Shown in pieces: positions 639 through 35,544 of a stretch of 36,677 bases of DNA. The stretch is from Octopus bimaculoides (lineage: Eukaryota), in assembly GCF_001194135.2 (NCBI RefSeq), contig NC_068982.1:162719005-162755681 (forward strand), written 5' to 3'. A program made the position numbers and the translations under genes. Each line of letters begins with the position of its first letter. The first letter of the stretch is position 1. Under the pieces are notes generated by a model, which saw only the letters and a program-made list of their open reading frames with translations, did not search any database and had not been told where the DNA came from.

Positions 639-770
639 TTAACCAAAGATGGCACCACAATTGGGACATCTCCGTTGTCGCATGGCTAAACAGCAAAGAA
701 TTCCTACTGGGAAAAATAACAGAGCACACAACACTCCGAGACATGTGAAATCATCTTCAAGAATGCCAAC
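639..770 (-). CDS. BRI3: BRI3 homologue, last coding exon: [43 protein letters not shown]
   Basis: Polypyrimidine tract and cag acceptor (AG at 772-771), phase 0, TAA at 641-639. The translation closely matches the BRI3 C-terminus as recalled (VGVLED...FPFGFICC...RKRRCPNCG). Confidence 0.95.
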
Positions 771-929
771 CTGAAAAAGAAAAAAAAATAATATAAATAA
801 AACACTACATAACTAGAATTTGATAGAAGATAGCAAACAGTTTGAATTAACAGAGAATTGAAGTAGATAAACAATTGCTAATGTAGTTGGATTAATAAAG
901 ATCTTGTTATAAGTATGTGGTAGTGGTGA

Positions 930-1102
930 TGGCAATGACATGGCTGCATGTCTAAGAAGTTTGCTTCTCAACATAATTTTGGAGACAATGTTTTCTACTG
1001 AAGTCCCAGACCAACCAAAGGCTTGTAAGAGAATCTAGTGGATATGAAATGAAAGAAACTGATTACACATGCACACACACACACGTGTGTGTGTGTGTGT
1101 GT
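930..1102 (+). mobile_element. Degraded octopod tRNA-derived SINE with CA/TG tail
   Basis: tggctgcatgtctaagaagtttgcttc...accaaaggcttgtaagagaatc...gaaagaaac, then (CA)/(TG). Resembles the 24060-24350 copy. Confidence 0.6.
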
Positions 1103-1204
1103 GCTTATATTTGTGCTTTGCAAATTGCTCAGCTCTGAGCAGTGACACTGATGTTATTTTCCCTGTAAACTGATTACAAGCAGGTTTTGTGCTTTCAAAA
1201 ATTT

Positions 1205-1350
1205 ATCATCATCGTTTAACATCCATCTTTCATGCTACCATGAGTGGGACAGTTCCACATGACCTGGCCAGGCCAAAGCCTGCACTAGACTTCTGTGGCT
1301 GTTTTGGCAAGATTTTTACAGCTGGATGCCCTTCCCAATACCAGTCACTC
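1205..1350 (-). mobile_element. RTE-3'-end SINE-like copy, degraded
   Basis: (CAT)n tail followed by cgtttaac...cagctggatgcccttcc, which is the reverse complement of the copy at 14553-14742. Confidence 0.8.
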
Positions 1351-1506
1351 GTTGCATAAAATTAATAAAATAGTCTTTTTACAAACATGTATTAAGGGAT
1401 TTAAGGAAAAATAACAAGATGCATCAATCTTGTATGTAGCTTTATACAGTTAGTTAAATGGGTAAGATCTAACTTAAAGTGAAAGAATGAATGAATGAAC
1501 ACTAAC

Positions 1507-1637
1507 CCTGCAAGCTGGACAACCTCCGACTACAACTACTTGTGGAGGAGGCTGAACTGTAACAGTTGTGTGTTGATGTGGGGGATAATAGCTAGGCATT
1601 GGCTGTTGGTTCATAGAACCATAGTTTCCAGTGTAAC
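1507..1637 (-). CDS. BRI3: BRI3 homologue, middle coding exon: (G)YTGNYGSMNQQPMPSYYPPHQHTTVTVQPPPQVVVVGGCPACR
   Basis: Acceptor ttatcttttgcag, donor AGG|gttagt, 131 nt, phase 1 in and phase 0 out. VVVGGCPxCR is the BRI3 family motif, and the exon joins its neighbours in frame. Confidence 0.95.
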
Positions 1638-2080
1638 CTGCAAAAGATAAAGGAATATCAAAAGCTGCTCAAATTTTTTTAAAACTGACAAAAAAATTGT
1701 ACAATTGTTACAATTTGAAACAGAAAAAAATAAGACAGACAAAGTAGTGAAAATAAATTTAATTTTAGTGTCTAGCCATTTATGATACAAAATATTCATC
1801 GGGGGCAGGATAGGCAGTGCCCATAAACTGTGCAGGTTATCACAGACTGGTATCTGTTCATGTTAATATTTACAGTGCTTAGTACAGCAATGATACAGAT
1901 GAAAGGAGCTGAAGGGAACGTCTGCTTCAGATGATTTGGAGCATCATGCATGCATATTGTTTTTTGTTGGGTAAGAGACAGAAAACTCGAAGACCACCCT
2001 GAGCAGTACAAACTGGCCATGCTACCACTCCCATTCCCAACTGAGAAGTCTTTTGTCTTGTAGGCATGCTAGTTCCCTGT

Positions 2081-2239
2081 TAAAAGCACTCCACACACAC
2101 TGTAAAGTAGTTGGCACTAGGAAGGGCATCCAGTAGTAGAAACCAACCACAAGACAATTGGAGCCTGGACAGCTGTTCGGCAGGCCAGCTCCTATCAAAC
2201 CATTCAACCCATACCAGCATGGAAAACAGACATCTGATG
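2081..2239 (+). mobile_element. RTE-3'-end SINE-like copy, degraded
   Basis: ggaagggcatccag...caaaccattcaacccataccagcatggaaa; same family as the LINE 3' ends in this window. Confidence 0.8.
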
Positions 2240-4134
2240 GGGAAACAAGTGGGGAAAACAATAGGAAGAGAGTCAAGCACAATTAGGAAGAGGCATTACA
2301 TAGATACCTTGAAAGGAAGCATAGAAAGCATTGCACAAGAAACAAAGAGGATACAACAGATTAATATCACAATGGAAGTGATGTATTGATAAGTGGAGAT
2401 TTAAGTTGGATGCTTTTAACTTAAATTCATTATCATCCTCATTGTTTTTACTTTAGTTTTTCCTATGCAGTCATAGATTCATTAAGATTTATTGAAGCAA
2501 TATTCTAAAGCTCCTGTTGTCAACCCCTGTCTGTTTATTAAAAAGTATTTTTATTCCATAGGTCTTCACATATTGAAATTACCAAGCCACAGGTAATTTA
2601 CTAAAGATAAACAGATTACCATTATCCACACAATATCAGAGCAAAGACATGTAACGAACATTCACACATGCACAGATATACACATAATTGGCTTCTGTAC
2701 AGTTTCTGTCTGCCAATTCATTCCCACACAGCAATGTCTGCATCTATTATTTAAAGTGATATAGAATGGTGGCCAAATACAATATTGATGAAGGTAAGAC
2801 CAAAAAGATTTTAAATGAATAAAGTAATAAAAGTGAAACAAAACAAAAAAAAGTTTTTCGCAAACATAGAGGGACATTTTACTCTACAAAATCAACATAA
2901 TTTCTAAAATTTCCCCGTCTACTTGAAAGTTAAACTAAAAGCGTTAAGACAGCTAAGTTTAGTCTTCAGCGATATAACTTTAATCTAAATATGCTTCCTG
3001 TAGCAATTCTCCTGAAAAACAGGATCATGTTAACAAAGATACATCACCCTGAAGTTTATAGACTTATTGCAACTAGGATAAGTACTTAAGTATTATGCAA
3101 CAGTGTTGAATTATTTAAACAATGGTTTGTAGAGATATCAGTACAAAGTACACACAGGATAGCTTGTCATATCTGCAGTCAATTGCAAAAATATAAATAT
3201 ATACATAACATCCTTCTCAACTTCAAAACATGTCAGCAAATAGTCTAAACACGCCAAAGCACCAGTGACATACAAGCTACTTGGAAACAATATAACTGAA
3301 AACTTTTTAGAAAGTTCTGTTGCATTTCTTGGCTCAGGAACTTAATTGGGCTAGGAGGGGTGGAGTTAAACAGCTAAAATAATCAGTACTAGAATTTAGC
3401 ATATCTGATGTGAGAAAGAAAATAAATATCTTAGTGACAATTCTATATTCTTCTTATAAATGTGTGCACTATTAAAAAGATATGGATTTTATGTATTAAA
3501 ATAGGTATGAATATAGTGATTTTGAAAGCATGGCAATGTAGTGAAGAATAGGTTAAATACAAAAAATACAAAGATTAAAATTTCATTTTAAAATAATCTT
3601 GATATTTTGACCAAAAAGGCCCCTAGTCATAACTAAAGAGAATGGAAGAGACATTTCAGGGTCATATTCTCAAATTTCTATGATGAGGTTTCACATATCT
3701 ATGGTAACCATTCCGAATATACAAAAACCTCACAAACATAATGCAAAATACAACTGATCATACTATCTACTTTCACACAAGCTAGAATTTATCCTAACAT
3801 ACAGACATGAAACATTGATAATCCAAAATATCTCAAACTTTGTCCTTATTTGTATTTAATCTGTTCTCTTCTCTTCTCAATAACACTGATATGGTTTTTT
3901 TTTTAAATCACTTATTTTTTTTTTAACAACATGCCTCTATATAGATTACTGTTCAAGTTAACTGCTTTTTCATTGCTTAAAGGGTCTCACTCCGGAGGAA
4001 TTCATCAGATGGAATATCAATAAAGAATTACTTTCAATACATTTCAGATATACTGTCTTATAAATGCTTTGCCTGTAGGAAACTTGAAATAATTAAGCTC
4101 TATTCCACCATCCCCATACACACACAATTGATCC

Positions 4135-4462
4135 TTTGATGTTTGAAGGTATTCTTTTACTGGTCATGGTCATTAAACTGCAGTTATGCTGAAACACAGC
4201 CTTCAGGTGTTTTAGTTAACCTATCAACCCCAGTACTTATTTCAGTCTTAATATTTTATTGATACCTTTTTATTAAATTAATAAGTTTGATTTTTTTTTT
4301 TTTGGTTCAAAAGCTGTAACTCAATATACCAGTTTATACAAATATTCACAGCAGCTTCTGCAAGTTTCTATTAAAACTTCACCCATAAGATATGGTCAAT
4401 GAATGCTTTGGGGTCAAATCTGAAACTGATTGCAAAGTGTTCTTAGCCACATAGCCCTGCCT
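4135..4462 (-). mobile_element. Degraded tRNA-SINE
   Basis: tcaaccccagtacttat core and cttagccacatagcc head, as reverse complement. Confidence 0.5.
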
Positions 4463-4955
4463 GTATTTATATTTAAAGACATTCAGTATTGGATCACATT
4501 AAATGATGATCTTCCTGATGAAAGACATATTGAACAATATAGTTCCTGCTAACAAAATATAAATGGAAGGATCATATATGGAATGTCTTTCATCATCACA
4601 ATCTGCTCAATCATAACTCAAACTGACATGGGTACAAGAAACAACTTGTTCTTGCCAAGGACTTGCAACTATTTTTAAAATTATTGAAACACAATGACCA
4701 TCCTCAAAAAAAAAATAAATAAATAAATAAATAAAAAATGTTTTCTGTTATCTCAAATGAGGTAGGAAACACTTATGAAATGTATAATAAATAGTTCAGA
4801 GACAAACATTATGCACGATTTGGAAAGATAGTTTGTAATGGAAAGATAGTAATAGCAAAGTGTTGAATTACTGCAATATCAAATTTAAGGTCTCAAACTT
4901 AACATTTTTACTTATAGGCCTTGTGTGTGTGATGTGCACATATATAAATATATAT

Positions 4956-7855
4956 ATCATCATGCTCTTCTAATGTCTGTTGTCCATGCTGAGGAGCTGC
5001 ACCAGACTCCAGTCTGATTTGGTGTGGCTCCTATGGCTGGATACCCTTCCTAACACCAACCACTTTACAGAGTGTGCTGGGTGCTTTTATGTCGCACCAC
5101 ACAGGTGCTTTTGCATGACACCACCATTAGTGCTTTATACCACCAGAGGGACCAGTCTTTACACTTCTGCCGTGGAGTCATCTTGCCTGAAAGGTTCAGC
5201 ATCCTGAAATTGTTCTTCGGTACTTCATCCCATATCTTCTTGGGTCCCCCACTTCCACATGTTCCATTTACTTTGAGAGATTGGCACTTCTTCATGGAGC
5301 TGTCAGCATCCATCTGTATCATATGACCAAATCAGCACAGTTGTCTCTCTTGCATGCAGCAACCAATTCCTCTTATGCCTAACTTCCCTCTCAAAACACT
5401 AGCACTGTCAAACATGCACATTTACATTACACATCCAGCAGAACATACTAGCCTCATTCTTTTCTAACCTTCACATGTCCTCTGCATTTAGGGCCCACAT
5501 CTCATTACCATGTAGAATTGCTGTTCATATAATGCATCATACAATCTTCCATTCAGTCACAGAGAGAAACCTTTCGTGGCCAACAGAGGTAACAACTCTC
5601 TGAATTTCCTCCACCCTATTCTTATTCTAGCTATCACACTGTTATCCCTGCCCCACTACTTATTTGATCCTCTAGGTAGCAGAAATTACCTACTACCTCT
5701 AATGAGCCAACTGGGCATTTGAGAGAATCAATTTCCCCATGTCTCTAAAGTTTTTATGGATCCTGTGCATCTTCCACATACGAAAATTGTCTTCTCTGAT
5801 AAGCTTCCTATTAATCCACTACACCTCGTGTCCATAGTTTACACTGGGTACACCGTATGGAGTTCCTACTTACAACTTTCCAACAAATCCTACCTGAATG
5901 GAGTGGGGTCCTGTCAGTTTTCTTGCTTGCTAGGACCTTAGTCTTTGCTAAGTTAACTATAAAGCCCTTAAATTCCAGATTTTGCTTTCTCATCTATCTC
6001 TGAGAGCAAGATCATCAGCATATAGTAGTTCCCAAGGGATGCCAGTCTTGAATTCCTGTTATGGCCAGGAGAAGAATAATGAAAAAGAGGGGACTAAGAA
6101 CTGAGACTTGATGAACCCCTACTTGTACATCAAATTCATCACTGTACTTGTTAACACTCACCTTACTGACAGCATCTTTGCACATGGCCTGTATAGCTTT
6201 CACCAGCCACTCATCTATCCCTAACCTCCTCAGAGCCCACCATATCACACAGTGGGGCACTATCGAAGGCTTTATCTAGATCAAATGTCAAGTATAATGG
6301 TTTATTCCTAGCTAAGTACTTCTCTTGCAGTTGCCTATGAAAATAGCATATAAAAGTGCTTTTTCCCCAGATGAAGCTGAACTGCATTTCGTTTATCCTA
6401 ATTCTGTTCCTCATTACTTTGACTATAACTCTCTCTGCAATTTTCATCACCAGGTTCAGGAGTTTGATGCCTCTATAGTTGCTTTTATCTAATGCACCAC
6501 CCTTATTTACCCTTGTAGCAGCTAACAATTATGCTGCTATGCCAGTCACTGGGTATCACACCATCCTGAATGACCTGATTAACATACAGGTGACTAGCCT
6601 GTATCCTACCTCACCAGATATCTCAAGCGTCTCAGGTGCGATTCCAGAGGGACCAGGAGCTTTCCCAGTTTTAAGGTTTTTAGTTGCCTTATCTACCATA
6701 CTGTTGTCCACTAGGATAGCTGGTCCATCTGTTGGATTCACATGATGGAGACTCCCTTTATTCCATCCATTCTCTACATTCAACAGTCTCACATAATAAC
6801 TTTTCAGCACCTCTTTCTTGTCTACATCACTAAGTGCAAGCATACCATTATCCATCTGCACACATTTCTCTCCAACAATATCTGGATTCTCACTGACACA
6901 CTGTCTAGCAATCTAGAACACTTCAAGTCACTGACCTTCATGCTGTAGGACATTGGCAAACCTCTTCTTTTCAGTTTCTACCCTAGCTAGATAGGCCCAA
7001 CATCTATCCTCTCTTTTAGCCTTCTAATAAGATTCTTTGCTACCACCTCTCTTTTCCACTCTTTCCAGACCTGTCTCTCCTCTTTTATGGCCCTGTCCAT
7101 ATCGCTGTTCCACAACCATGTCACCCTTGATCTGGCAGAGGCTTTGCTCCACCCACAAATTTTGTCTGTTGCCCTTTATAGATTGTCCCGTAGGAACATC
7201 CAGTTGTCCTGTATATTTATCTATCGTTACCTCCTTCTCAACATAGGCCTCATTGAGGACATCTCTAAATCTCTACCCGTTTGAAAGATCCTTGAACTTC
7301 CACAGCCTCCTTTTCTATATTGACTTGTGTCTCTGGATCTTTCTGGTCCTAAGCCTGAAGCCACTAACCAGTAGCTTATGTTGAGTTGTACATTCTTCCC
7401 CTGGGAAAGATTGTGCATTTATGAGCATATATCTGCCAGTGTGTCTGGTGAGGATGTAATCAATCTGGTTGGTGTCTCCACTGCCCCCACATATTGATAA
7501 GTGATCAGATAGTTAGGTTTTCTGAAGTTAGTGTTCCCTCTATAGGTGCTTTTATCTAATGCACCACCCTGACCCTTGTAGCAGCTAACAATTATGCTGC
7601 TACGCCAGCCACTGGATATTACACCTTCCTGAATGACCTGATTAACTATGCAGGTGACTAGCCTGTATCCTACCTTACTAGCAGCCTTGTCCCCACCTCA
7701 TTTCTGGAGTCAAAGCTGTAGCCACCATGCACACCCTGAAATCCATCAGAGTGTTTTGCAATATGTCCATTGAAGTCTCCTGCCATGATGAAAATGTTGT
7801 CATCTGTCATTGTCAAGGTAATCCTCAGAAGAGATTTGTAGAAGTGGCCCTTCTG
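4956..7855 (-). mobile_element. RTE-clade LINE, 5'-truncated and pseudogenised (APE endonuclease part, RT, 3' UTR, GAT tail)
   Basis: APE motif MAGDFNGH (about 7770-7795) and NQIDYIL; KAPGPSGI; SNYRGIKLL; VGVHQVSVLSPL; CGSGGPKKIWDEV. Many stops and frameshifts. Confidence 0.92.
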
Positions 7856-7857
7856 AG

Positions 7858-7918
<61 letters not shown>

Positions 7919-7920
7919 TA
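7858..7920. repeat. (CT)n(AT)n compound microsatellite
   Basis: Direct reading. Confidence 0.95.
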
Positions 7921-8366
7921 GCAGTTGTATACTGTCAACTTAATGTGACAGTCAATAAGGGAATCATACTGCTGCTATTTAGCCCTAGGAAGCTGGAACG
8001 CTTCCTGTCGGCCTTGACACATTTCCTGTGTCCTTATATTTGCGAGGGGGAGACAAGCCTAGTCTGGATTCAGGGACATGTTTCTGAGTCATTGCTCGTC
8101 ATCAGCCTGAAGTAGCAAAACCAGCTGGCTGAAGATGTCTGTCAACTTCTTGCAAATATATATATTTCTAGTGAAAACAAATTCACTGATCACAAAAATT
8201 AGAAATAATCTAATTATAAATCTCACAGAGAGAATTAAGCAGCAGTGTTACGATAAAGCAGTTGTATACTGTCAACTTAATGTGACAGTCCCAATAAGAG
8301 AATCATACTGCTGCTATTTAGCCCTAGGAAGCTGGACTGCTTCCTGTCGGCCTTGACACATTTCCT
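7920..8366 (-). mobile_element. Retrozyme-like or Penelope-terminal-repeat-like element: ~337-bp unit, 1.3 copies, ~108-bp terminal direct repeats
   Basis: 7920-8027 is repeated at 8257-8366 with a 2-bp indel and 3 substitutions. The unit contains a hammerhead motif. Confidence 0.75.
8069..8111 (-). ncRNA. Minimal type I hammerhead ribozyme motif
   Basis: The minus strand reads UUCAGG CUGAUGA C GAG caauga CUC A GAAAC au GUC CCUGAA. Stem I is 6 bp, both core boxes are intact, stem II is 3 bp plus a C.A pair, stem III is the palindrome ACAUGU, and the cleavage triplet is GUC. Confidence 0.8.
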
Positions 8367-8374
8367 CCTTTAAT

Positions 8375-10558
8375 GAAGAAGCTCGCCTATGTTCAGTGAC
8401 GCGAAGACCAAAGATTTGAAGTGTTTCAGATTGCAAGACAATGTGGGAGAGAAAGTTGTGATGTCCTAGGAGAGAAATGCTTCTGCATGGATGATGGCAC
8501 ACTTGCATTTAATGATTCAGCAAAGGAAGAGGCTTGGAAATGCCATTATGAAAGACTGGTGAACGTGGAGAATGAATGGGAGGAGAAGAGTCTGCCAAAT
8601 GTTGCTCCAGTTGAGGGACCAGCTATCTGAATCAATAGCACCTTGGCAGATTAAGCAATTAAGGATATGAAGACAGGGAAAGCCCCTGGCCCATCAGGAA
8701 TCACCGCTGAAATGCTTAAAATATCTGGCGGTATGGGCTATGGTCTAGTCACCCATATTGTAAATCAGGTGGCTCACGAAAGAGTCATACCCAATGACTA
8801 GTGTAGCAGCACCATAGTCAACTGCTACAAAGGTAAAGGTGATGCTTTAGATAGAAATAATTACAGAGGTATCAAATTGTTGGATGAGGTGATGAAAGTT
8901 ACGGAGAGGGTCACAGCCTAACTAATTAGGGAGAGAGGTAGTCTAGATGAGATGCAGTTTTTGTGTCAGGGAGAAGCACCACTGATGCTATATTTCTGGT
9001 AAAGCCGCTGCAGGAGAAATGCATAGCCAAAGATAAACCTTTTTACTTGGCTTTTGTTGACTTGGAGAAAGCCTTTGACAGGCTCCCTGGATCCCTTATC
9101 TGGTGGTCAATGAAGAAACTAGGGATAGACGAGTACAGGGACACTACCAGTAAGGTGAGAGTTGACAATGAGTACAGCAAAGAATTCAGGGTACAAGTTG
9201 ATGTTCACAAAGGATTGGTCCTCATTCACCTTTTGTTCATCAGTCCTCTAGGCAATAACAGAGAAATTTAAGACAGGCTGCCCCTGGGAGCTCCTCTATA
9301 CCGATGATCTTGTTCTTATAGTTGAATCACTACCAGAACTAGAAGTTCCAGGTACAGAACCAAGGTCTGGAATCAAAGGGCCTTAGAGTTAACCTAGCAA
9401 AACCCAAAGTCTTAGTAAGTAGGAAGTTAGACAAATCACAAATCCCTTCAAGTAGATGGCCTTGCTCAATATGTAGAAAAGGCATAGGTAGAAACTCCAT
9501 AAGATGTACCTGGTGTAAGCTTTGGCCACATAAGCAGTGCAGCAACATCAGAGGAAGATTAACAACAAAAATGTACAGAAAATACTACCTAGAGGTAGTA
9601 GATAGCTTCTGTTATCTGGGTGATCAAGTTAGTAGCAGAGGTGGATGCTCCGAGAGTGTAGCTGTGAGAATAAGATTAAGCTGGGTGAAGTTCAGAGAGC
9701 TCCTACCTCTGCTGGAAACAAAGGGCCTATCATTCAGAGTGAAAGGTAGATTGTAAAATGCTTGTGTGCGAACAACTATGTTATACACAGCAGTGAAACA
9801 TGGGCTGTGACAGCCAAGGATATGCGTAGGCTTGAAAGAAATGAAACCAGTATGCTTCACTGGATGTGCAATGTCAGTGTGCATGTCTGACAGAGTAAGC
9901 ATCTTGAGAGAAAAGTTGGGCATAAGAGATATCAGATGTGGTATGCAAGAGAGACGACTGCACTGGTATGGTCATGTGACACATATGGAGGACAGCTCTG
10001 TAAAGTGCCAATCTCTAACTGTAGAGGGAACCTGTGGTAGAACTTTGGGCCTCGCAGAGGCAATGACTAGCAACCGAGACCTTTGGCAATATGCTGTGCT
10101 TGAAAAGACTTGTCAAGCCAAGTGAAATTGTAGTTGTGGCTGATGCTGGTGTCACGTAATTGGCACCCGTGCTGGTGGCACATAGGCACCTTTCAAGTGT
10201 TGGGCCTTGTGGAGGTAAAGTGGCCTATGCCAGTAACACGTGAAAAGCTCCTTTCAAGTGTTGGGCCTCATGGAATCAATGACCAAGACCTTTGGCATTA
10301 TGTAGTGCTTGAGAAGAATACTCATCAAGCAAAGTAAAATCAGTCATGGCAGGTACTGATGTTATACAAATGGCACCTGTGCTGGTAGCACGTAAAAGCG
10401 CCCATTACACTTGGATTGGTTGGCATCAGGAAGGGCATCCAGCCCTAGAACCCGTGCCAAATCAGACTGAGGTCTGGTGCAGCCATCCAGGTTGCCAGCC
10501 CTGGTCAAACCATTCAACCCTTGCCAGCATGGACAATGGACACTAAAAAATGATGATG
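8375..10558 (+). mobile_element. RTE-clade LINE, 5'-truncated, pseudogenised RT with 3' UTR and GAT tail
   Basis: KAPGPSGI, NYRGIKLL, STTDAIFLV, FVDLEKAFD, LYTDDLV, RLHWYGHV, EKTCQAK*, followed by the shared SINE-like 3' end. Confidence 0.92.
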
Positions 10559-10560
10559 AA

Positions 10561-11345
10561 TCTAACAGTATAGTTTCAAAGCCAGACATAGGAAAGTTAC
10601 CATGATTCAGGTCTATGCACCAAATGATGCTGCAGGAGGTAATAAGCAAGATAAGTTATATGATCACCTCCAGGAGGTACATAATGAAATACCAAGTTAC
10701 AACTTCAAGCTTGTCGTTAGCAATTTTAATGAACAAGTGGATTCTAACAGGCAGGATATGCTGAGCATGGTAAAACTTCATGGCAATGTGAATGAAACCA
10801 GCAACAATGGAGAAAGTATGTTGCTGACTGGCACTGCAGGACTGTATGGAGAATACCTTCTTTCAATACAAGTAAGAAGATAAAGCTGCAACTTTTATTA
10901 TTCTATTGTTGTACCAACAGCTGTCTTCACCTGTGAAACATGGAAGACAGTGAAGATTCTCAATTGCTGGCTATGTTCCATTGATCCTGCCTATGTTCAA
11001 TGCTGGATATCTCTTACCGGAAAAGAGTGAGAAACAAAGAGGTGACCACAAAAGCTGACATTGGAAGTTTGTGGGATGTGGTGACTAAGTGACAGTTTAC
11101 TGGTTATGTCCGTTGATTACTGCAGGAGAGAATGCGACTGTCATGATGGAATGTACACTGGAAGGAAGAAAGAGGTCGAGTAGAAGACCAAAGAAGACAT
11201 GGCACAGTATGTCCCAAGATGACATGATAGCAATGGGAGTTGGCCCGAGTGGAGTAAAGTGGTAAGTGATCAATCAGGATGTTTGGAGAAGACTCATTGC
11301 CCCTTGTGTCGATAGCACTAGAATATCTGAGAGCTAAGAAACTGA
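10561..11345 (+). mobile_element. Second RTE subfamily (RTE-1/BovB-like), internally deleted: APE fragment fused to C-terminal region
   Basis: IQVYAP and a decayed GDFN-like motif, then at about 10895 a jump to VVPTAVFTCETWK and a ...EGRKRGRV-like C-terminus. Confidence 0.7.
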
Positions 11346-12864
11346 CTGTAGTCAAGCTGAGGCACTGACTTGAAGGTTTTCATCAGTACTTATATTATTG
11401 ACATCAATTTATAAGATAGTTAAGTTACCTCTTGATGTAAAATGATGCAACATAATCCACTTCTGAACCTTCTAAATAGTTAAGCTAGTGAAAATTGAAG
11501 TAGTTCTTTAACACAATGAAAGAATTATCTCTAGAGAGACTTATGAAATCATCAACCTTGCCATGTGAAAGGAATCTTTTTAAGTATTATCAATGAGAGG
11601 TAGTGGTAATACTTAAACAAGGAACACTTGCAGTGTGGTGTAGTGAGAATGTTGGATGTTGGCATTAGAAAAGAAAATGCTCATCTAGGAAAGACTGGTA
11701 AGATTTAAAAGAATAAAGAATAGACAGTTGTGGTGGTCGAGACGAAAGAGTCGAAAGGTGACGATCATATATATTAGTATAAATCATTAAGATATAAAAT
11801 TTAAGATAGAAAAAATATCAGGAAGTTTATAGTCTGTGTTAAAAAATGGCAGTTTAACTGTGTACCCAAGCACTCCTTTTTCCAACTGTGTTTCAACCAT
11901 CCACTTTCTCCAGTTCTTGCTTGCTTCCCTCCCTTGTTCAGCTCTTTCTATAGAAATTTAGAAATGCCAGAGGTTCTGAATGAACATCACCTACATTGAC
12001 ATAATCAATATTGGAGAACTCTGTAAAAGTCAAGAGAACTAAATTTAATCATGTGACTTACTACTACCATCCAACCTTTGGAGTGCTTTTAGTGAAGTTT
12101 ATTGCAGCAAGCATTCAAACCAGGCCTCTAGTCTGAGAATAACTTGCTCAAGTTTTGCCACCTCCTATTATTGTACTAAACCAGGACACGTAGTTTCTTT
12201 AAAGTATGTTCCAATGTTTCTATGGTTAGTAGTCCAGGATAACTAAAACATTTTTATCAAGTATACAACAATACATGACACCATTAAGTACATCACCAAC
12301 TGGAGTTACATTTAAAAGCAAAATGTCTAAATTTTCTTTACAAGAAATGTATTACAGTTATAGCACTGAATCAATTAACTATTATATTTAACTATCATCT
12401 GAATGATGCAAAAATGAAAACAAAAAAAAAAGAAGAAAAAGATTTAAAGAACCGACGACAAAGGAAGCTAAGGAATTACAATTATTGATTAACAACAGGT
12501 AAAAGGATAAACATTGTCAGATAGAAGCTGTTTAGACTAGCTCTGTTGATATTTGATAAGAATATCTTTGATAGTATTAATAAGAGGTTAAAGGTTAGAG
12601 TTGATTGACAAGGGAGTTTTGTTGAAATAAATACAAGCATTAAATGTCTAAGAGGAGTTGTTAGCAAGGTTATCATTTCTCAGGCTATTACCCTCATCTA
12701 CAGTAGAAATGAAATCTATTAATATCTAAATTTACAGGTTTCAATTAGTTTTATCTCCAGGATGTATTCACAGTAGCAGGCTACAGCTTTTATCTGAATA
12801 TTCGAGATTTATAATAAAAAGAAGCTCTACTTCCTGCATTTAATATTGCAAAATAAACATCTAG

Positions 12865-13040
12865 AACATACAAGGCCTGATTCAACAAATCTATGATCAA
12901 AGGCATTTCAGCCGAGGTCATTCCATCTTTTTGTATATTAAAGATTACATTAGCTAATGTGTGCTTTCTTTTTCACCTGGTAAGGTATGACTTGAGAGAA
13001 ATTAGCTGTTATTTCTTGCAAGTCAAATGACTATAGAGAC
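12865..13040 (+). repeat. Short interspersed repeat; related pieces at about 15030-15120 and 18550-18640
   Basis: Shared gatcaaa...tcattccatctttt and gctgttatt...gcaagtc segments. Confidence 0.45.
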
Positions 13041-13789
13041 TTACACATTTGTAGTAGTTTTATTTATTTATGGTTATTCTTTAATAGCTTTATTTGTGAT
13101 TGTATGTTTAATCTTTACACTACCATCTCAACACAACATTTAAACAGTTTATTTGGTCATAGTTTCATAAATTAGTTCTTTTTGTCATCATACCACACCT
13201 TACCGGAGACTTAATCAGTAGCTCATAATGTACCATCAGCCTTATTACTAGATCCAAGCTCAGGTTTTCAAACCTAGTTTATTTAGCTGTAAATAATCCA
13301 ACACAGTAAGTACAATTTACAAGTCTCAATATTCAAAACCTTAATTCAGCACTGGATGAGTTGGAGAGTTGAAGGGCTGAGCCACATTGAGCTGTTTAGA
13401 TACAATATTGAATACAAAGTCTGCCAGCACACAAACAATCCGTTCATTATTATATTCAAGCTTGACATGAATTACTAATGTTAAATTTTGAAATGTCCAT
13501 CAAGCTAGCACAATCCCACCCTACAATGAATGCTCCTAATAAACAGAAAGCTCCTGCATTTCAAACTCCAAACATTTAGAAGTTTACTATATTACAGTTT
13601 TCACAATTCCTTCATGTTTTGTTGTGTAAAAGCTATCAGTCTTATATGTAGTGCATTCTCCAGTCTGGACAAGGAACATTCAGTTATTTGACCAACTGAA
13701 TTCTTATTTGTGAAATTAAGATGTAAACAGCTCCATGTTTCACAGATATATATACTCTTAAAGCAACTCCCAGCCGGATCAGTCTGACA

Positions 13790-13980
13790 CAATATGACAT
13801 GGTTGGATCTTTGAATGACAACTACAATCCCGAAAGAGATAAAAAAAAAAATCAGTCCAAGAACTGATACTTTATCAACTCCAAAAGGACAAAAGGTAAA
13901 GTTGGCCATAGCAAGATTCCAACTCAGAATGCGGAGAGCTGGAACAAATACTGCAAGCCATTCTAATACTAACAACCACC
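13790..13980 (-). mobile_element. tRNA-SINE with the cctttt-ggagttgataaagta core
   Basis: The reverse complement reads ttctgagttggaatcttgctatggccaactttaccttttgtccttttggagttgataaag. Same family as 19660, 23918, 29700 and 33090. Confidence 0.65.
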
Positions 13981-14552
13981 ATTTTGCTGCCATTGATGTT
14001 TATATAAAATGCTTTTAGTCTGCATCAAATATGAAACCATTTAAAATAAAAAATGAGTTTTGAGCCACTGCTTTAACATTGGTTTTTACCAGTCTTTTAC
14101 TGGTTTTTGATAGTTTTAGTTGACCATATCAATTCCAGTACTTATTTTTATTTTTCAAATCTAAGTGAAAGGGCATAAAGATATATAATACAAATAGCAC
14201 CAGTTTTCATTTCAATGTAAACATAGTCACAGCCATAGAGAGAGACACACACACACACACACACTAAAAACTTTTGCCTAGTCTCTATCAGTTAAATTCC
14301 ACTCCCAAGGTATTGGTAACATGGTAACATTAAAAACTAAAACTCAAATATTAAAACAATCTAAAATTAAGTAGAGCTCAGCAACTATGCGGTTTATTAG
14401 CTATCCACTAATTTTAATAACTGAACTATATTTGAGGATTCTACGTTAGTAAATGAGCAAGAATGCATATTAGAACAGTATTATCACAGAGGAACCAGTC
14501 TTGTTGGGACAAAAACAGTTCAAACTGAGTAATAATTTGGTAGCACGTGCAG

Positions 14553-14742
14553 GTGACACGTAAAAGCACCGACTACACTCTCTGAGTGGTTGGCATTAGG
14601 AAGGGCATCCAGCTGTAGAAACTCTGCCAAATTTAGATTGGAGCCTGGTGTTGCCATCTGGTTTCACCAGTCCTCAGTCAAGTCGTCCAACCCATGCTAG
14701 CATGGAAAGCAGACGTTAAACGATGATGATGATGATGATGAT
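14553..14742 (+). mobile_element. Young RTE-3'-end SINE-like copy with (GAT)n tail
   Basis: Near-identical to 34960-35128 and to the reverse complement of 18657-18841. Confidence 0.9.
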
Positions 14743-15471
14743 CCAAAGAGAGAATAAAATTCATTTAACTGTAGAGCTTTTTTTTTTCCTTTTCAAAATC
14801 ACATTTTGTCAGTGAAAGTTACAGTAGAAATACTCAAATGACAAAATAGGTATGCTGACAGAGATTTTCATTAGCAAAGCTTTCTTTAAAATAATGTAAT
14901 ATTTGTAAGTTGGTGTTTTAATCATCAGGTGTTTCCTTTCTAGCATGTTGTTTAGTCCCAGGTTAGCTTTGACTGAGCAAGGCAACCTATCATTTATTTT
15001 GGCACAGGTATCAAGGACTACATTAGTCAATGTAGCTGCCATTTTTAAGCCAGTAGAGTGAAGCCCGAGGATGATCTGGCTGTTATTACAAGCAAGTCGA
15101 GTAATTACATAGACTTACCCTAGTTAGTTAATGTTTATATCATAGAAACATTAGAGGCACCCATCTTTGCAAATTTCAATTCATTGCTTCATTTGGAAAT
15201 TGCTACTTTTCATTAAGAACTTGTGGCTTTCAAAGCAAAAAGATGAAAGCTCTTAGGTTTATTTTTGGAATCTCAGTAATTAAGAGAAAATGTTGGCCTT
15301 GACAGCTATAAAACGATATAATTAACAGTAATGAAATGTAGAACCAGAAGGAATAAGAGCGATATTATTTAACTATGATAAAGAAAATGTCACCAGTAGT
15401 CTTTCACGAAAGAAAATGAAACTTGGTCAATTCCAGGAAAGTAAGATTAAAATTGTACAAGAGAAACTTAC

Positions 15472-15574
15472 CAGTGTTACTTTTAAAATGTTCTGACTCT
15501 TGATAGCTAGGTGGTGGTCCTGTATATGTTGGCATAAACCCACCAGGTTGGTTGGGTGCTGACGGGACAGACAT
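15472..15574 (-). CDS. BRI3: BRI3 homologue, first coding exon: MSVPSAPNQPGGFMPTYTGPPPSYQESEHFKSNT(G)
   Basis: Acceptor tttttgttag (exon starts at 15579), 5 nt of UTR, ATG at 15574, donor G|gtaagt. Phase 1 matches the next exon. It carries the PPSY motif and gives a 121-aa total. Confidence 0.85.
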
Positions 15575-18656: not shown

Positions 18657-19375
18657 CATCATCATCATCATCATCGTTTAACGTCCGCTTTCCATGCTAG
18701 CATGGGTTGGACGATTTGACTGAGGACTGGTGAAACCGGATGGCAACACCAGGCTCCAGTCTGATTTGGCAGAGTTTCTACAGCTGGATGCCCTTCCTAA
18801 CGCCAACCACTCAGAGAGTGTAGTGGGTGCTTTTACGTGTCNNNNNNNNNNNNNNNNNNNNNNNNNNNNNNNNNNNNNNNNNNNNNNNNNNNNNNNNNNN
18901 NNNNNNNNNNNNNNNNNNNNNNNNNNNNNNNNNNNNNNNNNNNNNNNNNNNNNNNNNNNNNNNNNNNNNNNNNNNNNNNNNNNNNNNNNNNNNNNNNNNN
19001 NNNNNNNNNNNNNNNNNNNNNNNNNNNNNNNNNNNNNNNNNNNNNCCCGCACAAGCCAGTCCAGGGGCACTGGCAACGATCTCGCTCGAAAATCCTACAG
19101 GAGCCAGTCAGGCGGTACTGGCAACGGCCACGCTCAAAATGGTGCGTCTCATGTGCCACCCGCACAAGAACCAGTCCAGGGGCACTGGCAACGATCTTAC
19201 TTGGCTTGCCGGGTCTTCTCACGCACAGCACATTTCCAAAGGTCTCGGTCAGTAGTCATCGCCTCGGTGAGGCCCAATGTACGAAGGTCTTGCCTCACCA
19301 CCTCAGCCCAGGTCTTCCTGGGCCTACCTCTTCCACGGGTTCCCTCAACTGTTAGGGCTTTTTTAAAGACAGCAG
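18657..19375 (-). mobile_element. Young 5'-truncated RTE 3' fragment with internal minisatellite; contains gap 18842-19045
   Basis: ORF tail LTVEGTRGRGRPRKTWAEVVRQDLRTLGLTEAMTTDRDLWKCAVREKTRQAK*, CpGs intact, (GAT)n tail. Confidence 0.9.
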
Positions 19376-21297: not shown

Positions 21298-23917
21298 TTA
21301 TCATCATCATCGTTTAAAGTTCGTTTTCCTTGCTGGCATGGGTTGGAAAGTTCAGCTGGGGTCTGGGAAGCGAGGAGGCTGCACCAAGCCCCAATCTGAT
21401 CTGGCAATATTTCTACTGCTCGATGCCCTTCCTAATGCCAACTACTCCAAAAGTGAGTGGGTGCTTTTTACATGCCTCCAGCACAGGGGCCAGGGGAGCT
21501 GGCATCAGCCACTATCAGATGGTGCTTTTTATGTGCCACTAGCATGGAAGCCAGTCAAGGCGGCACTGGCATCAGCCATGTTCAGATGGTGCTTTTTATG
21601 TGCCACTGGCATGGAAGCCAGTCAAGGCGGCACTGGCATCAGCCATGTTCAGANNNNNNNNNNGTCAAGGCGGCACTGGCATCAGCCATGTTCAGATGGT
21701 GCTTTTTATGTGCCACTGGCATGGAAGCCAGTCAAGGCGGCACTGGCATCAGCCATGTTCAGATGGTGCTTTTTACGTGCCACTGGTACGGGGGTCACAT
21801 CAACAATTTCTATTTGATTGTAATTTGATTTGATTTTGATATTGATGTTGATGTTGATCTACTTGATTCAATAGGTCTCCTCAAGCACAGCATGTTGCCC
21901 TATAATCCAAGGTACTTTTGAGTAGGCTGGTTATGTGACACTGGTTTGGTTACAGCTGTGAACTCACTTTATTTGTCGGGTCTTCCCAGTCACAGCATAC
22001 CTCCAGAGGTCTCCGTCTTTTGTCATTGCCTCTGCGAAGCCCAATGTTCAAAGGTCATGCTTCACCACCTCATCCCAAGTCTTCCTGGGTTTCCCTCTTC
22101 CCCAGATTCCTTCCACTGTTTGGGAGTGGCAATTCTTCACACAGCTCTCCTCGTCCATCTGCAGTACATGACCATACCAATGCAAACATCTCTCTTGCAT
22201 GCCACGTCCGATGCTTTTTATGTCTAACATTTCTCTCAGGGCGCTTACACCTGGTTGTGTGTGCACACTGACATTACACACCTAGTAGATCATGCTAGCT
22301 TCATTTCTTTCGAGCCTATGCATGTCATCAGCAGTCACTGTCCATGTTTCACTGCCATGAAGCATGGCAGTTCACACACTTGCATCATACAATCTACCTT
22401 TCACTCTGAGCAAGAGGCCCTTTGTCACCAGTAGGGGTAGAAGCTTTCTGAACTTTGCCCAGGCTATTCGTATTCTAGTGACAACACTCTCTGAGCATCC
22501 ACCCCCACTACTAACTTGGTCACCTAGGTAGTGGAAACTATTAACTACTTCTAGTTTCTTCCCCTGGCATGTGATGGAATCTGTTTTCTGAGCACCTGTC
22601 ATGTTTATTGCCCCTGTGCATTGGCCACACATGAAAGCTATCTTCCTTTGATGTTGCTGCACCTATGTGTCTATAGCGTATACTGGGTACATCTTATGGA
22701 GTTTCTACCTACACCTTTTCTACAGATCAAGCAGGGCCACCTACCTGAAGAGGTGTGTGATGTGTTTACCTTCCTACTTACTAGAACTTTGGTCTTTGCA
22801 ACATTGACTCTAAGGCCCTTCAATTCTAGACCTTGCTTCCACATCTGAAATTTCTTCTCTAGTTCTGGTAGTGATTCTGCTATGAGGACCAGGTCATCAG
22901 CATAGAGGAGCTCCCAGGGGCAACCTGTCTTGAATTCCTCTGTTATTGCCTGGAGGATTATGATGAATAGGAGGGGGCTGAGGGCTGATCCTTGGTGGAC
23001 CCCTACTTCTACCTGGAATTCTTCACTATACTCATTGCTGATCCTAACCCTACTAAAGACATCTCTGTATAGGGCCTGTACAACCCTTATTAACCATTCG
23101 TCAATCCCCAGTTTCCACATCGCCCACCAGATAAGGGATTGGGGGACCCTGTCAAAGGCATTTTCCAAGTCCACAAAAGCCAAATATAGGGGCTTATCTT
23201 TGGCTAGGTATTTCTCCTGCAGTTGTCGTACCAGGAATATAGCATCAGTGGTGCTTCTGTGTGGCACAAAACCGAACTGCATCTCATCTAAGCAGACTCT
23301 CTCCCTAATTAGTTGGTCTATGACCTTCATCACCTGATCCAGCAGTTTGATACCTCTGTAGTTATTTCTGTCTGAAGCATTACCTTTACCTTTGTAGCAG
23401 TTGACTATGGTGCTGCTACGCCAGTCATTGGGTATGACTCCATCATGAACTACCTGGTTTACAATATGGGTGACTAGGCTATAGCCCACACCACCAGATG
23501 TTTTAAGCATCTCAGCAATGATTCCTGCTGGGCCGGGGGCTTTTCCTGGCTCCATACCCTTAATTGCTTTGGATAGCTGGTCCCTCTACTGGATCAACAT
23601 TTGGCAGGCTCTCCTCCTCCCATTCATTCTCCACGTTCAGCAGTCTTTCATAATGGCTTCTCCAAGTCTCTTTCTTTTCCAAATCATTAAAAGCAAGTGC
23701 ACCATCTTCCATGCAGACACATTTCTCTCCTGTGACATCACAATTTTCTCTCTCACACTGTCTTGCAATCTGAAATACCTCAGTTCTTTGGTCCTCGCGT
23801 CGCTGGACATTGGCAAACTTCTTCTTTTCTGCTTTGCCTTGGCTATGTATACCTGTCGCCCTGCCTCCCTTTTGGCTATCTGGTATGGTTCCTTGCTACT
23901 CCCACCCTTCCAGGCTT
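21298..23917 (-). mobile_element. RTE-clade LINE, 5'-truncated, ~2.6 kb, best preserved copy; 3' UTR holds a 67-bp minisatellite and a 10-N gap
   Basis: Continuous from the (GAT)n tail through the 3' UTR to the RT ORF. Confidence 0.93.
22671..23555 (-). pseudogene. RTE reverse transcriptase ORF remnant (294 aa)
   Basis: KAPGPAGI, NNYRGIKLL, QFGFVPHRSTTDAIF, AFVDLENAFD, GVHQGSALSPLLF, LLYADDLVL. Flanked by a frameshift and stops. Confidence 0.93.
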
Positions 23918-24059: not shown

Positions 24060-24355
24060 GAAAAAAAGATGCTTCCTAACTACATGGTTTCAAGGTTAGT
24101 CTCACTGGGTGGTACTTTAGACAAGGGGCTTCTACTACAGCCCTGGGGCAACCAAAGCATAGTGAGTGGATTTTGAAGATAGAAACTGAAGGTAACTTGT
24201 TATAATTGTGTGTGTGTGTGTTTTACTGTCTCTTTCTTTAACATCATATAATAGTTGGAAGCAAGTTTCAGCATCATTCGAGTGATGTCCTTTATTTCCT
24301 ATCTTTGGAGACATGCCTGATCATGAGGAAATATTACTTTTTAGCTGAAACAGGG
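24060..24355 (+). mobile_element. Octopod tRNA-SINE (degraded) with internal (TG)n
   Basis: cttcctaactacatggtttcaaggttagtc...cttctactacagcc...gtgagtggatttt...gaaactgaag. Confidence 0.65.
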
Positions 24356-24899
24356 TGTCTCTGGCCCTTTTAGAACAATTCCTTGCTTCTCATGAATTGC
24401 ATATAAAACAGTGGAAATAATACCAGAAATGAGCTTTCAATTAGCAGCAACACTTTATTCTTCTGCTAAATAAAATCATACAGCAAACCAGACTAATACA
24501 TCACAAAGAATGCTGTATGTTGAAAATCATACATGGTTGGCTTTTCAACTCAGTTGAACTTGGTTACATGTGCTTCAACAGGAACAAAAATAATGTGACA
24601 TAGCTTCCTGAAAACAAACTCTCCCCTCTGCTTAGAATGAAAAACATCATGCTATTTATTAACAAAAAGAGGTTTAGACAAGCATTTTTAATTTGCTGTG
24701 TTGGTGGTCTATTGTACAACACAATTGGATACAAGCTCCATATCGCATAAAACTAGACCAATCCAAATGCCTGACTCAGCAAAGTATTTCAACGTCACAT
24801 GACCACTCATTAGAGACTTATATGTGGAGCCTTTTTTAAATTACTTAAGCCTAAAACATGCTATTATGAAATTAGTCTTGCTTCATCTTTATTTGGAAA

Positions 24900-34926: not shown

Positions 34927-35128
34927 GACACCATTTCGAGCGTGGCCGTTTTCGTGCGGGTGACACGTAAAAGCACCTACTACACTCTCTGAGTGGTTGG
35001 CGTTAGGAAGGGCATCCAGCTGTAGAAACTCTGCCAAATTAGATTGGAGCCTGGTGTAGCCATCCGGTTGCACCAGTCCTCAGTCAAATCGTCCAACCCA
35101 TGCTAGCATGGAAAGCGGACGTTAAACG
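34927..35128 (+). mobile_element. Young RTE-3'-end SINE-like copy inserted in a (TATG)n tract
   Basis: Near-identical to 14553-14742; atgtatgtat occurs on both sides. Confidence 0.9.
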
Positions 35129-35544
35129 ATGATGATGATGATGATGATGTATGTATGTATGTATGTATGTATGTATGTATGAATGAATGAATGAATGATT
35201 AGATGTGAGTGTGTAACTACATGTACTGTTGGTGGTACTTTTACTACTCTGGACTTTTCCATTTTCCTTTCTGACAAAGAGCTATACTTGAAACATCAAA
35301 AACTCTCTTCTTCCCAAGTGTCAAACTAATACATTCCATGTGTATGTCCTCTTGTTTTGTTACTGTTATTTTTAATGTTCGATTATTCAATTTGACTCTG
35401 TGTGTGTCTGTGTCTGTGTGGAGGGAACCTATGGGAGAGGTAGACACAGGTAGTGAAGCATTATCTTTGGATGTTGAGTCTTACAGAGGCAATGACAAGT
35501 GATCATTGAGAAGGCACATCAAGCCATGTGAAATCATAATTGTG

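Follow-up and report, generated by a model that had tools for sequence, protein, structure and literature searches.

A probable solo copy of a retrozyme-like repeat with a canonical type I hammerhead in an intron of Octopus bimaculoides BRI3

The metazoan non-LTR retrozymes (axolotl Rtz_331/HHR_Amex1, mussel Mg353 and coral Amil224; PMC7229834) are the closest known systems to the element described here. They consist of tandem units of 170–400 bp in which GC stays below 45%; each unit has a type I hammerhead, its RNA is self-paired, and retrozymes are considered 'active' when at least two consecutive units carry hammerheads (PMC7229834). As a class they form multi-copy families scattered through the genome, with linear and circular RNAs. 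In arrays of such hammerheads neighbouring units pair via helix III, and the unit-length RNA can circularise (PMC4209133; PMC7229834). Solo, monomeric retrozymes are common in Xenopus, where 43% of the copies are intronic, a depletion relative to intergenic DNA (10.64898/2026.07.22.740005). The catalytic core of hammerheads comprises CUGANGA and GAAA together with a UH cleavage site. In the canonical type I hammerhead a loop caps helix II, which has about 4 bp, and helix III has 1–2 bp with a palindromic loop of 2–4 nt (PMC4209133). Two other systems invite comparison: (i) the minimal hammerheads of Penelope-like elements (PLEs), which have a helix II of 6–8 bp, a helix I of 4–5 bp, a bulge after A9 and a G10.1-C11.1 pair, and which lie in pseudo-LTRs flanking an RT/GIY-YIG ORF (PMC4209133). 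Retrozymes have been proposed to derive from these pseudo-LTRs (10.64898/2026.07.22.740005), and integration of the PLE type is known both to leave partial tandems and to target (TA)n (PMC8557442). (ii) The intronic hammerheads HH9 and HH10 of amniotes (RF02275 and RF02277), type I ribozymes in sense orientation in introns of protein-coding genes, which are orthologously conserved in many species and are stable monomers.

The locus studied here lies in a window of 36,677 nt (the whole stretch of DNA that was analysed), which is 100% identical to O. bimaculoides CM046602.1. On the minus strand of the window lies the gene for the BRI3 protein of this species (XP_014778815, Pfam PF10164), at positions 642–15574 with exons at 15574–15470, ~1647–1498 and 773–642. 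Because these minus-strand exons flank the hammerhead motif, the latter lies in BRI3 intron 1 (~13.8 kb) in sense orientation, and the exon mapping thus bears out an initial annotation of this DNA, which had placed the motif on the transcribed strand of a 13.8-kb BRI3 intron. The same intron also holds the A-B-A' repeat, the microsatellite and the LINE block discussed below. We consider it probable that the locus is a solo, 1.33-unit copy of a ~338-nt non-LTR retrozyme-like repeat carrying a genuine canonical type I hammerhead, and that this copy is a neutral passenger, likely inactive.

The core motif (8069–8111, minus strand) comprises helix I, CUGAUGA, helix II, GAAA, helix III and GUC. Read from 8111 to 8069 it runs UUCAGG, CUGAUGA, C, GAG, CAAUGA, CUC, A, GAAAC, AU, GUC and CCUGAA, which is exactly how it had been transcribed initially, with stem I, both boxes, GUC, ACAUGU and the C.A pair. 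All 6 bp of helix I are paired, the two core boxes (CUGAUGA and GAAA) are undamaged and the GUC stands in the correct order; this GUC is the cleavage triplet, with the scissile bond predicted at C8075|C8074. Helix II has four positions, three of them paired (CGAG/CUCA), and a 6-nt loop, CAAUGA; the conserved G10.1-C11.1 pair is missing, and a C8098.A8085 mismatch closes the helix. Helix III is the palindrome ACAUGU, that is, 2 bp (A-U and C-G) with the 2-nt loop AU. Judged by the criteria of PMC4209133, which include an open helix I of ~6 bp, the topology is canonical type I. The label 'minimal', given to the motif initially, therefore has to be abandoned, since a geometry of 6 bp, four positions plus a 6-nt loop, and 2 bp plus a 2-nt palindromic loop is that of canonical metazoan type I hammerheads; the broader claim, a type I hammerhead of the retroelement kind with a palindromic helix III that requires a dimer, is supported.

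The motif extends beyond its core (8063–8119, minus strand) into a loop 1, an opposing U and a distal extension of helix I. Loop 1 is UAC, at 8114–8112 directly 5' of helix I, and is opposed by the single U8068 on the 3' side; after a C8115.C8067 mismatch, the distal extension continues with G8116-C8066, U8117-A8065, U8118-G8064 and U8119-A8063. UAC, the single U and the CAAUGA of loop 2 occur in the same combination in bona fide relatives, so that the loop 1/loop 2 tertiary-contact pattern of the latter is matched. A perfect 8-nt palindrome, CCAGCUGG, lies just 5' of loop 1 (minus strand, 8122–8129); it supplies much of the predicted dimer stabilisation and could either compete with or assist dimerisation of the hammerhead.

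The hammerhead is part of a partial tandem, A-B-A', equivalent to 1.33 copies of a 338-nt unit (period 338–339), all on the minus strand: segment A (8253–8366, 114 nt), the first partial copy, contains a CTGTCA...TGACAG hairpin; segment B (8028–8252, 225 nt), the unique part of the unit, holds the hammerhead; and segment A' (7916–8027, 112 nt), the second copy of A, runs at its 3' end (..CTGCTATAT) into an (AT)n tract. A and A' differ by 4 substitutions in 112 positions and by a 2-nt indel, and are thus 96–97% identical (3.6% diverged). The unit has a GC content of 39.8% and stops in all six frames. When folded as a circle, its RNA has 59% of the bases paired and a minimum free energy of -95.5 kcal/mol, compared with -72.1 +/- 5.4 kcal/mol for dinucleotide shuffles (n = 200; z = -4.3), none of the 200 being as good. 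This partial tandem, the best identifying context of the motif, had been overlooked by the initial annotation.

In most of these respects the octopus unit agrees with the retrozymes: 338 nt fall within their 170–400, the GC content is below 45%, the unit is non-coding and strongly self-paired, and it has one type I hammerhead, with a helix I of 6 bp, a helix II of four positions with a loop of 5–6 nt, and a weak palindromic helix III. The latter, GAAACAUGUC, is the same as that of the axolotl Ax330 hammerhead. There are also differences: (i) unlike the retrozyme arrays, the octopus locus has 1.33 units and one hammerhead; A-B-A' therefore fails the requirement of two consecutive hammerheads for an active retrozyme, and corresponds to the 'solo/monomer' class of 10.64898/2026.07.22.740005 and not to an active array. 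(ii) The octopus motif has C.A in place of G10.1-C11.1, a position at which axolotl Amex2 has U.U. (iii) There is no sequence similarity between the octopus unit and the retrozymes outside the ribozyme. Architecture and context suggest that the unit belongs to a retrozyme family. Further copies were sought in several ways: BLASTN found no second copy of the unit in the window and four octopod BRI3 loci (136 kb); a six-frame peptide probe of the unit had no match among 5.8 billion predicted proteins, and a 21-mer from segment A was absent from the metagenome, GTDB and IMG/VR collections, octopus being poorly sampled in both cases; and an RT ORF of the window had no record in the assemblies index.

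The insertion can be seen against its empty site. We compared the BRI3 loci of O. sinensis, O. vulgaris and Argonauta hians, the last of which is too diverged to be used as an outgroup. In O. sinensis and O. vulgaris the intron is 87–93% identical to the window on both sides and jumps from window position 12552 to 7903; a block of 4.65 kb (7904–12551) is thus specific to O. bimaculoides and missing from the orthologous intron of the two sister species. Their empty site reads ...TCTTAATCAAAA(AT)n(GA)nCACTCAC..., with an intact microsatellite. Since this (AT)n(GA)n tract, at 7858–7920 of the window, is present at the empty site in both species, it is a pre-existing target, and for the same reason we rejected the idea that it is the tail of the element. 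The divergence of the orthologous intron (7–13%) exceeds that between A and A' (3.6%), which fits an insertion after the species split; given this lower divergence and the clean empty site, a deletion in the sinensis/vulgaris lineage instead of an insertion in O. bimaculoides is disfavoured. Besides A-B-A', the block contains two LINE sequences: an RTE-like LINE on the plus strand, truncated at its 5' end (8372 to ~10560) and ending ..AAAAAATGATGATGA, and a further LINE fragment (~10561–12551). A Pfam scan of the neighbouring 4.2 kb detected only decayed LINE RT and zinc-finger sequence, on the opposite strand.

What is found only in O. bimaculoides, then, when compared with the two sister species, is a copy of more than unit length, RNA-derived in appearance, at an (AT)n microsatellite. 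In the mechanism that we propose, hammerheads of neighbouring units in arrays would pair through their palindromic ACAUGU into an extended helix III, and unit-length RNA would be cleaved out; a circular or multimeric ribozyme-bearing RNA would have served as the template for reverse transcription over more than one round. Priming would have relied on AT microhomology with the microsatellite, because the 3' junction of A' coincides with a UAUAU in the unit; this junction, the length beyond one unit and the AT target are together as expected from a rolling or multimeric template and target-primed reverse transcription. The reverse transcriptase may have come from an autonomous retroelement, either a PLE, as in the current retrozyme model, or the abutting RTE-like LINE. 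The single O. bimaculoides copy would be neutral intronic passenger DNA and no regulator of BRI3.

Among the other explanations, the one that survives best, although we consider it unlikely, is that A-B-A' is a remnant of an autonomous element: a fragment of a PLE pseudo-LTR, or a sequence that the neighbouring RTE-like LINE captured and copied in a composite insertion resembling twin priming. The combination of a partial tandem and an (AT)n target is indeed a signature of PLE integration (PMC8557442), retrozymes may themselves descend from PLE pseudo-LTRs, as mentioned above, and the element meets the truncated RTE-like LINE head-to-head within one species-specific block. However, no PLE-type RT or GIY-YIG coding remnant is present on the strand of the element in the block, and the geometry of the hammerhead is canonical. 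The motif shares with the PLE minimal hammerheads (PMC4209133) its association with retroelements, its type I topology and its need for dimerisation, and the partial-tandem insertion and microsatellite target of the locus resemble PLE integration; yet it has none of the distinguishing features of the minimal type listed at the outset, and does not lie in pseudo-LTRs that flank an RT/GIY-YIG ORF. Moreover, the other RTE copies in the window and in the sister species are without the unit, and sequential insertions into the microsatellite explain the block equally well, because it also holds the further LINE fragment. Two further ideas were rejected: that the unit is the pseudo-LTR of an autonomous PLE at the BRI3 locus, for which there is no PLE coding remnant, and that it is the 5' processing ribozyme of the downstream RTE on the same strand (7860 to 5000), a copy that O. 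sinensis and O. vulgaris have although they lack the unit. As to the junction itself, the 5' end of the element (8366, minus) faces the 5'-truncated end of the RTE-like LINE (8372, plus) at a distance of 5 nt, a geometry that might reflect a twin-priming-like composite insertion in which the LINE reverse transcriptase copied a ribozyme RNA.

Less probable again is that the motif is a chance hammerhead-like string in AT-rich intronic repeat DNA, lying inside an unrelated local duplication. The initial annotation had proposed descriptor and covariance searches, and both single out the motif: it is the sole match to our own hammerhead descriptor in the window, and the only respectable match to a relaxed descriptor in 136 kb of octopod DNA. 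In 20 Mb of first-order Markov sequence, a loose descriptor gave 0.65 matches per Mb and strand (~1.3 per Mb of double-stranded random sequence), or 0.1 per Mb and strand when a helix I of at least 6 bp was required, so that such a match is rare for one window and not for a Gb-scale genome. A covariance model, R1, made only from four published retrozyme hammerheads (one from coral, one from mussel and two from axolotl; PMC7229834 supplement), also puts the motif first, with 21.5 bits and an E-value of ~3e-4 in the window and 1e-3 in 136 kb, against ~11 bits for the runner-up. Within the window, the second-best R1 match (24315–24365, plus strand; 10.6 bits, E ~0.6–2) has a damaged first core box (UCAUGA) and adjoins an RTE-like LINE at 22.6–24 kb; it is not significant and probably due to chance. 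The octopus genome measures ~2.3 Gb, and at that size the R1 E-value extrapolates to ~20 chance matches. Three features outside both the descriptor and the covariance model, namely the UAC that precedes helix I, the single U that follows it and the partial distal stem, cut this a further ~1e-3-fold, and with all features taken together well under one chance match per genome is expected.

Rfam is silent on the motif: searches of intervals of 2.5 kb and 101 nt gave no hammerhead match, whether at the gathering cut-off or with E-values of up to 10. The consensus of its hammerhead model RF00163 depends strongly on the sequence of helix II and presupposes a longer helix III, and in a positive control RF00163 gave bona fide relatives 22–39 bits, most of them below its threshold of 34; since this control shows the model to be insensitive for the class of the motif, the silence of Rfam is weak counter-evidence and no refutation.

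The bona fide relatives came from a scan of public metagenome and GTDB contigs with the pattern CTGATGA-N4-CAATGA-N4-GAAAC, which has the loop 2 of the octopus motif and gave 88 unique matches. Helix II is fully paired in 9 of these, compared with 1.7 expected, and the fully paired set includes clear canonical type I hammerheads, several of them on animal contigs, with R1 scores of 19–50 bits, a range at whose low end the octopus motif lies. A UAY triplet directly 5' of a 6-bp helix I is present in 6 of the 9 real members and in only 2 of the 65 chance-type matches, and the real members further have in common a single U directly after helix I and a distal stem, which is short; none of these modules was specified in the pattern. 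Six relatives from animal-derived metagenome contigs, of the RF00163 class (L010, L019, L033, L050, L056 and L074), have a modular layout identical to that of the octopus motif: distal stem, UAY, 6-bp helix I, CUGAUGA, four positions, CAAUGA, four positions, GAAAC, palindromic helix III, GUC, 6 bp, U and distal stem, the modules of the extended hammerhead being seen in L010, L019, L033 and L050. They differ from it in helix II, which is GYCC/GGRC and includes G10.1-C11.1, and in helix III, which in most of them is a palindrome of 8 nt (ACAGCUGU), whereas the octopus motif has CGAG/CUCA and the shorter ACAUGU, and goes undetected by RF00163; every position of helix II is different, with 3 of the 4 pairs kept. 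At 10.1/11.1 all the relatives found have either G10.1-C11.1 or U..U (the latter also in L050 and L058), and never C-G. We looked for PLE ORFs beside these metagenomic relatives and found none.

Three of the metagenomic contigs deserve mention in their own right. L010 (JGIcombinedJ30088_10104519) has at 353–840 a tandem repeat of 342 nt, each unit of which carries a canonical type I hammerhead (R1 38 and 50 bits); it is a retrozyme-like element, presumably of animal origin. L033 has at 554–640 two overlapping hammerhead-like matches on opposite strands, which form a long hairpin with a weak miRNA-like Rfam match (mir-1597, 33.6 bits, far under threshold); the arrangement recalls the 'dual motifs on opposite strands' described for hammerheads associated with PLEs. 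L055 (Ga0209542_10011560) has at 1319–1365 a hammerhead-like type I match (R1 26.7 bits) with a CAAUGA loop 2 and UAC 5' of helix I; this contig is apparently bacterial, because it encodes EF-Tu- and EF-G-like proteins.

Chance is thus favoured by the frequency of loose descriptor matches, by the genome-wide extrapolation of the R1 E-value, by a monomer fold that is no better than that of shuffled sequence (z = -0.08), by the lack of an Rfam match and by the fact that no family copies were recovered. Against it, the helix lengths are exactly canonical; a loop 1 UAC, whose background frequency is 1.4%, and an opposing U fit the CAAUGA class of loop 2, in which UAY separates real members from chance-type matches; helix III is the same as in an axolotl hammerhead; and the motif sits inside a 338-nt partial tandem that spans just 1.2% of the window and whose unit RNA folds far better than its shuffles. 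We therefore regard a chance origin of the motif as very unlikely. Still more improbable, in our estimate, is a broader version of the retrozyme reading, in which the locus would represent an octopus-wide, undescribed and possibly active family of canonical type I retrozymes, mobilised here by an RTE-like LINE, in a head-to-head composite insertion of twin-priming-like form into the AT microsatellite, and not by a PLE. Were RNAs of such a family plentiful, pairing in trans between them and the copy in the intron could lead to cleavage of BRI3 pre-mRNA.

Returning to the solo copy that we favour, its capacity to cleave appears limited. The descriptor and R1 find one hammerhead only in the intron and in the whole window, so the dimer has no partner in cis, and helix III of the monomer is predicted not to close, because a 2-nt loop is forbidden. 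The intermolecular self-duplex of ACAUGU is predicted at just -4.6 to -6 kcal/mol, and in the native 131-nt context the pairing probability of helices I and II is at most 9%. Two copies are predicted to co-fold at -39.0 kcal/mol, compared with 2 x -13.9 kcal/mol for the monomers (~11 kcal/mol better). On these predictions the active fold is a minority conformer. The axolotl monomer with an identical helix III showed 6% cleavage in one hour in vitro (PMC7229834). As regards the mismatch at 10.1/11.1, axolotl Amex2, a family of ~60,000 copies, has U.U there and retains cleavage (PMC7229834), so that, by analogy, such a mismatch would not always be fatal; the C.A could plausibly stem from CpG-to-CpA decay, a G at 11.1 making C11.2-G11.1 a CpG. 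With one hammerhead only and a C.A at 10.1/11.1, the O. bimaculoides copy is most likely inactive or barely active.

These properties speak against the earlier suggestion that every BRI3 pre-mRNA would contain the ribozyme and could be cut co-transcriptionally: there is no partner in cis, the monomer is without a helix III, G10.1-C11.1 is lost, the ACAUGU duplex is weak, helices I and II are predicted to form only seldom, and the element is absent in two sister species. Efficient co-transcriptional cutting of BRI3 pre-mRNA is improbable. The element cannot be considered a conserved part of BRI3, since the orthologous introns of O. sinensis and O. vulgaris do not contain it, and the octopus motif, although type I and in sense orientation in an intron of a protein-coding gene as are HH9 and HH10, is unlike these in being species-specific, in having no monomer fold and in having no Rfam match. 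The least probable reading of all is therefore that of a functional intronic ribozyme that modulates BRI3 by cutting its pre-mRNA co-transcriptionally, alone or paired in trans with abundant family RNAs; the sense orientation in a long intron, the undamaged boxes and GUC, the gain on co-folding two copies, the conserved intronic hammerheads of amniotes (PMC7761336) and the very high abundance that mussel retrozyme RNAs can reach (PMC7229834) would agree with it, but the points just listed, together with the low in vitro cleavage of the axolotl monomer, weigh far more heavily.

Retrozyme-like elements are a known kind of element; in cephalopods they have not yet been reported in searchable papers, where the mussel is the sole mollusc example described, and we found no report of a cephalopod retrozyme or hammerhead in the searchable literature. 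If the family is confirmed, non-LTR retrozymes with canonical type I hammerheads extend to cephalopods, and the locus provides a cleanly dated insertion, with the empty site in two sister species, that shows an integration footprint: a length beyond one unit and AT-microhomology priming at a microsatellite. For the biology of BRI3 it carries little weight, given that this copy resembles a neutral passenger. The locus also counsels caution, since cleavage does not follow from an undamaged-looking hammerhead core, even in an intron that is transcribed, if helix III needs a partner and this is missing.

Two further kinds of repeats are present in the window. A direct repeat of ~150 nt (6465–6617 and 7532–7681; 91–93% identity, spacing ~1064 nt) lies within the minus-strand RTE-like LINE downstream of the microsatellite and represents either a duplication inside this LINE or a nested pair of fragments from one LINE family. 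A SINE-like repeat of ~190 bp is present at least five times in the window (10371–10559, 14547–14732, 18665–18839, 21301–21492 and 34954–35138) and recurs in the O. sinensis and O. vulgaris loci with 74–78% identity; two of its occurrences come after the 3' portion of an RTE-like LINE, with the ending ..AAAAAATGATGATGA, and the repeat may share, or be, the 3' tail of that LINE.
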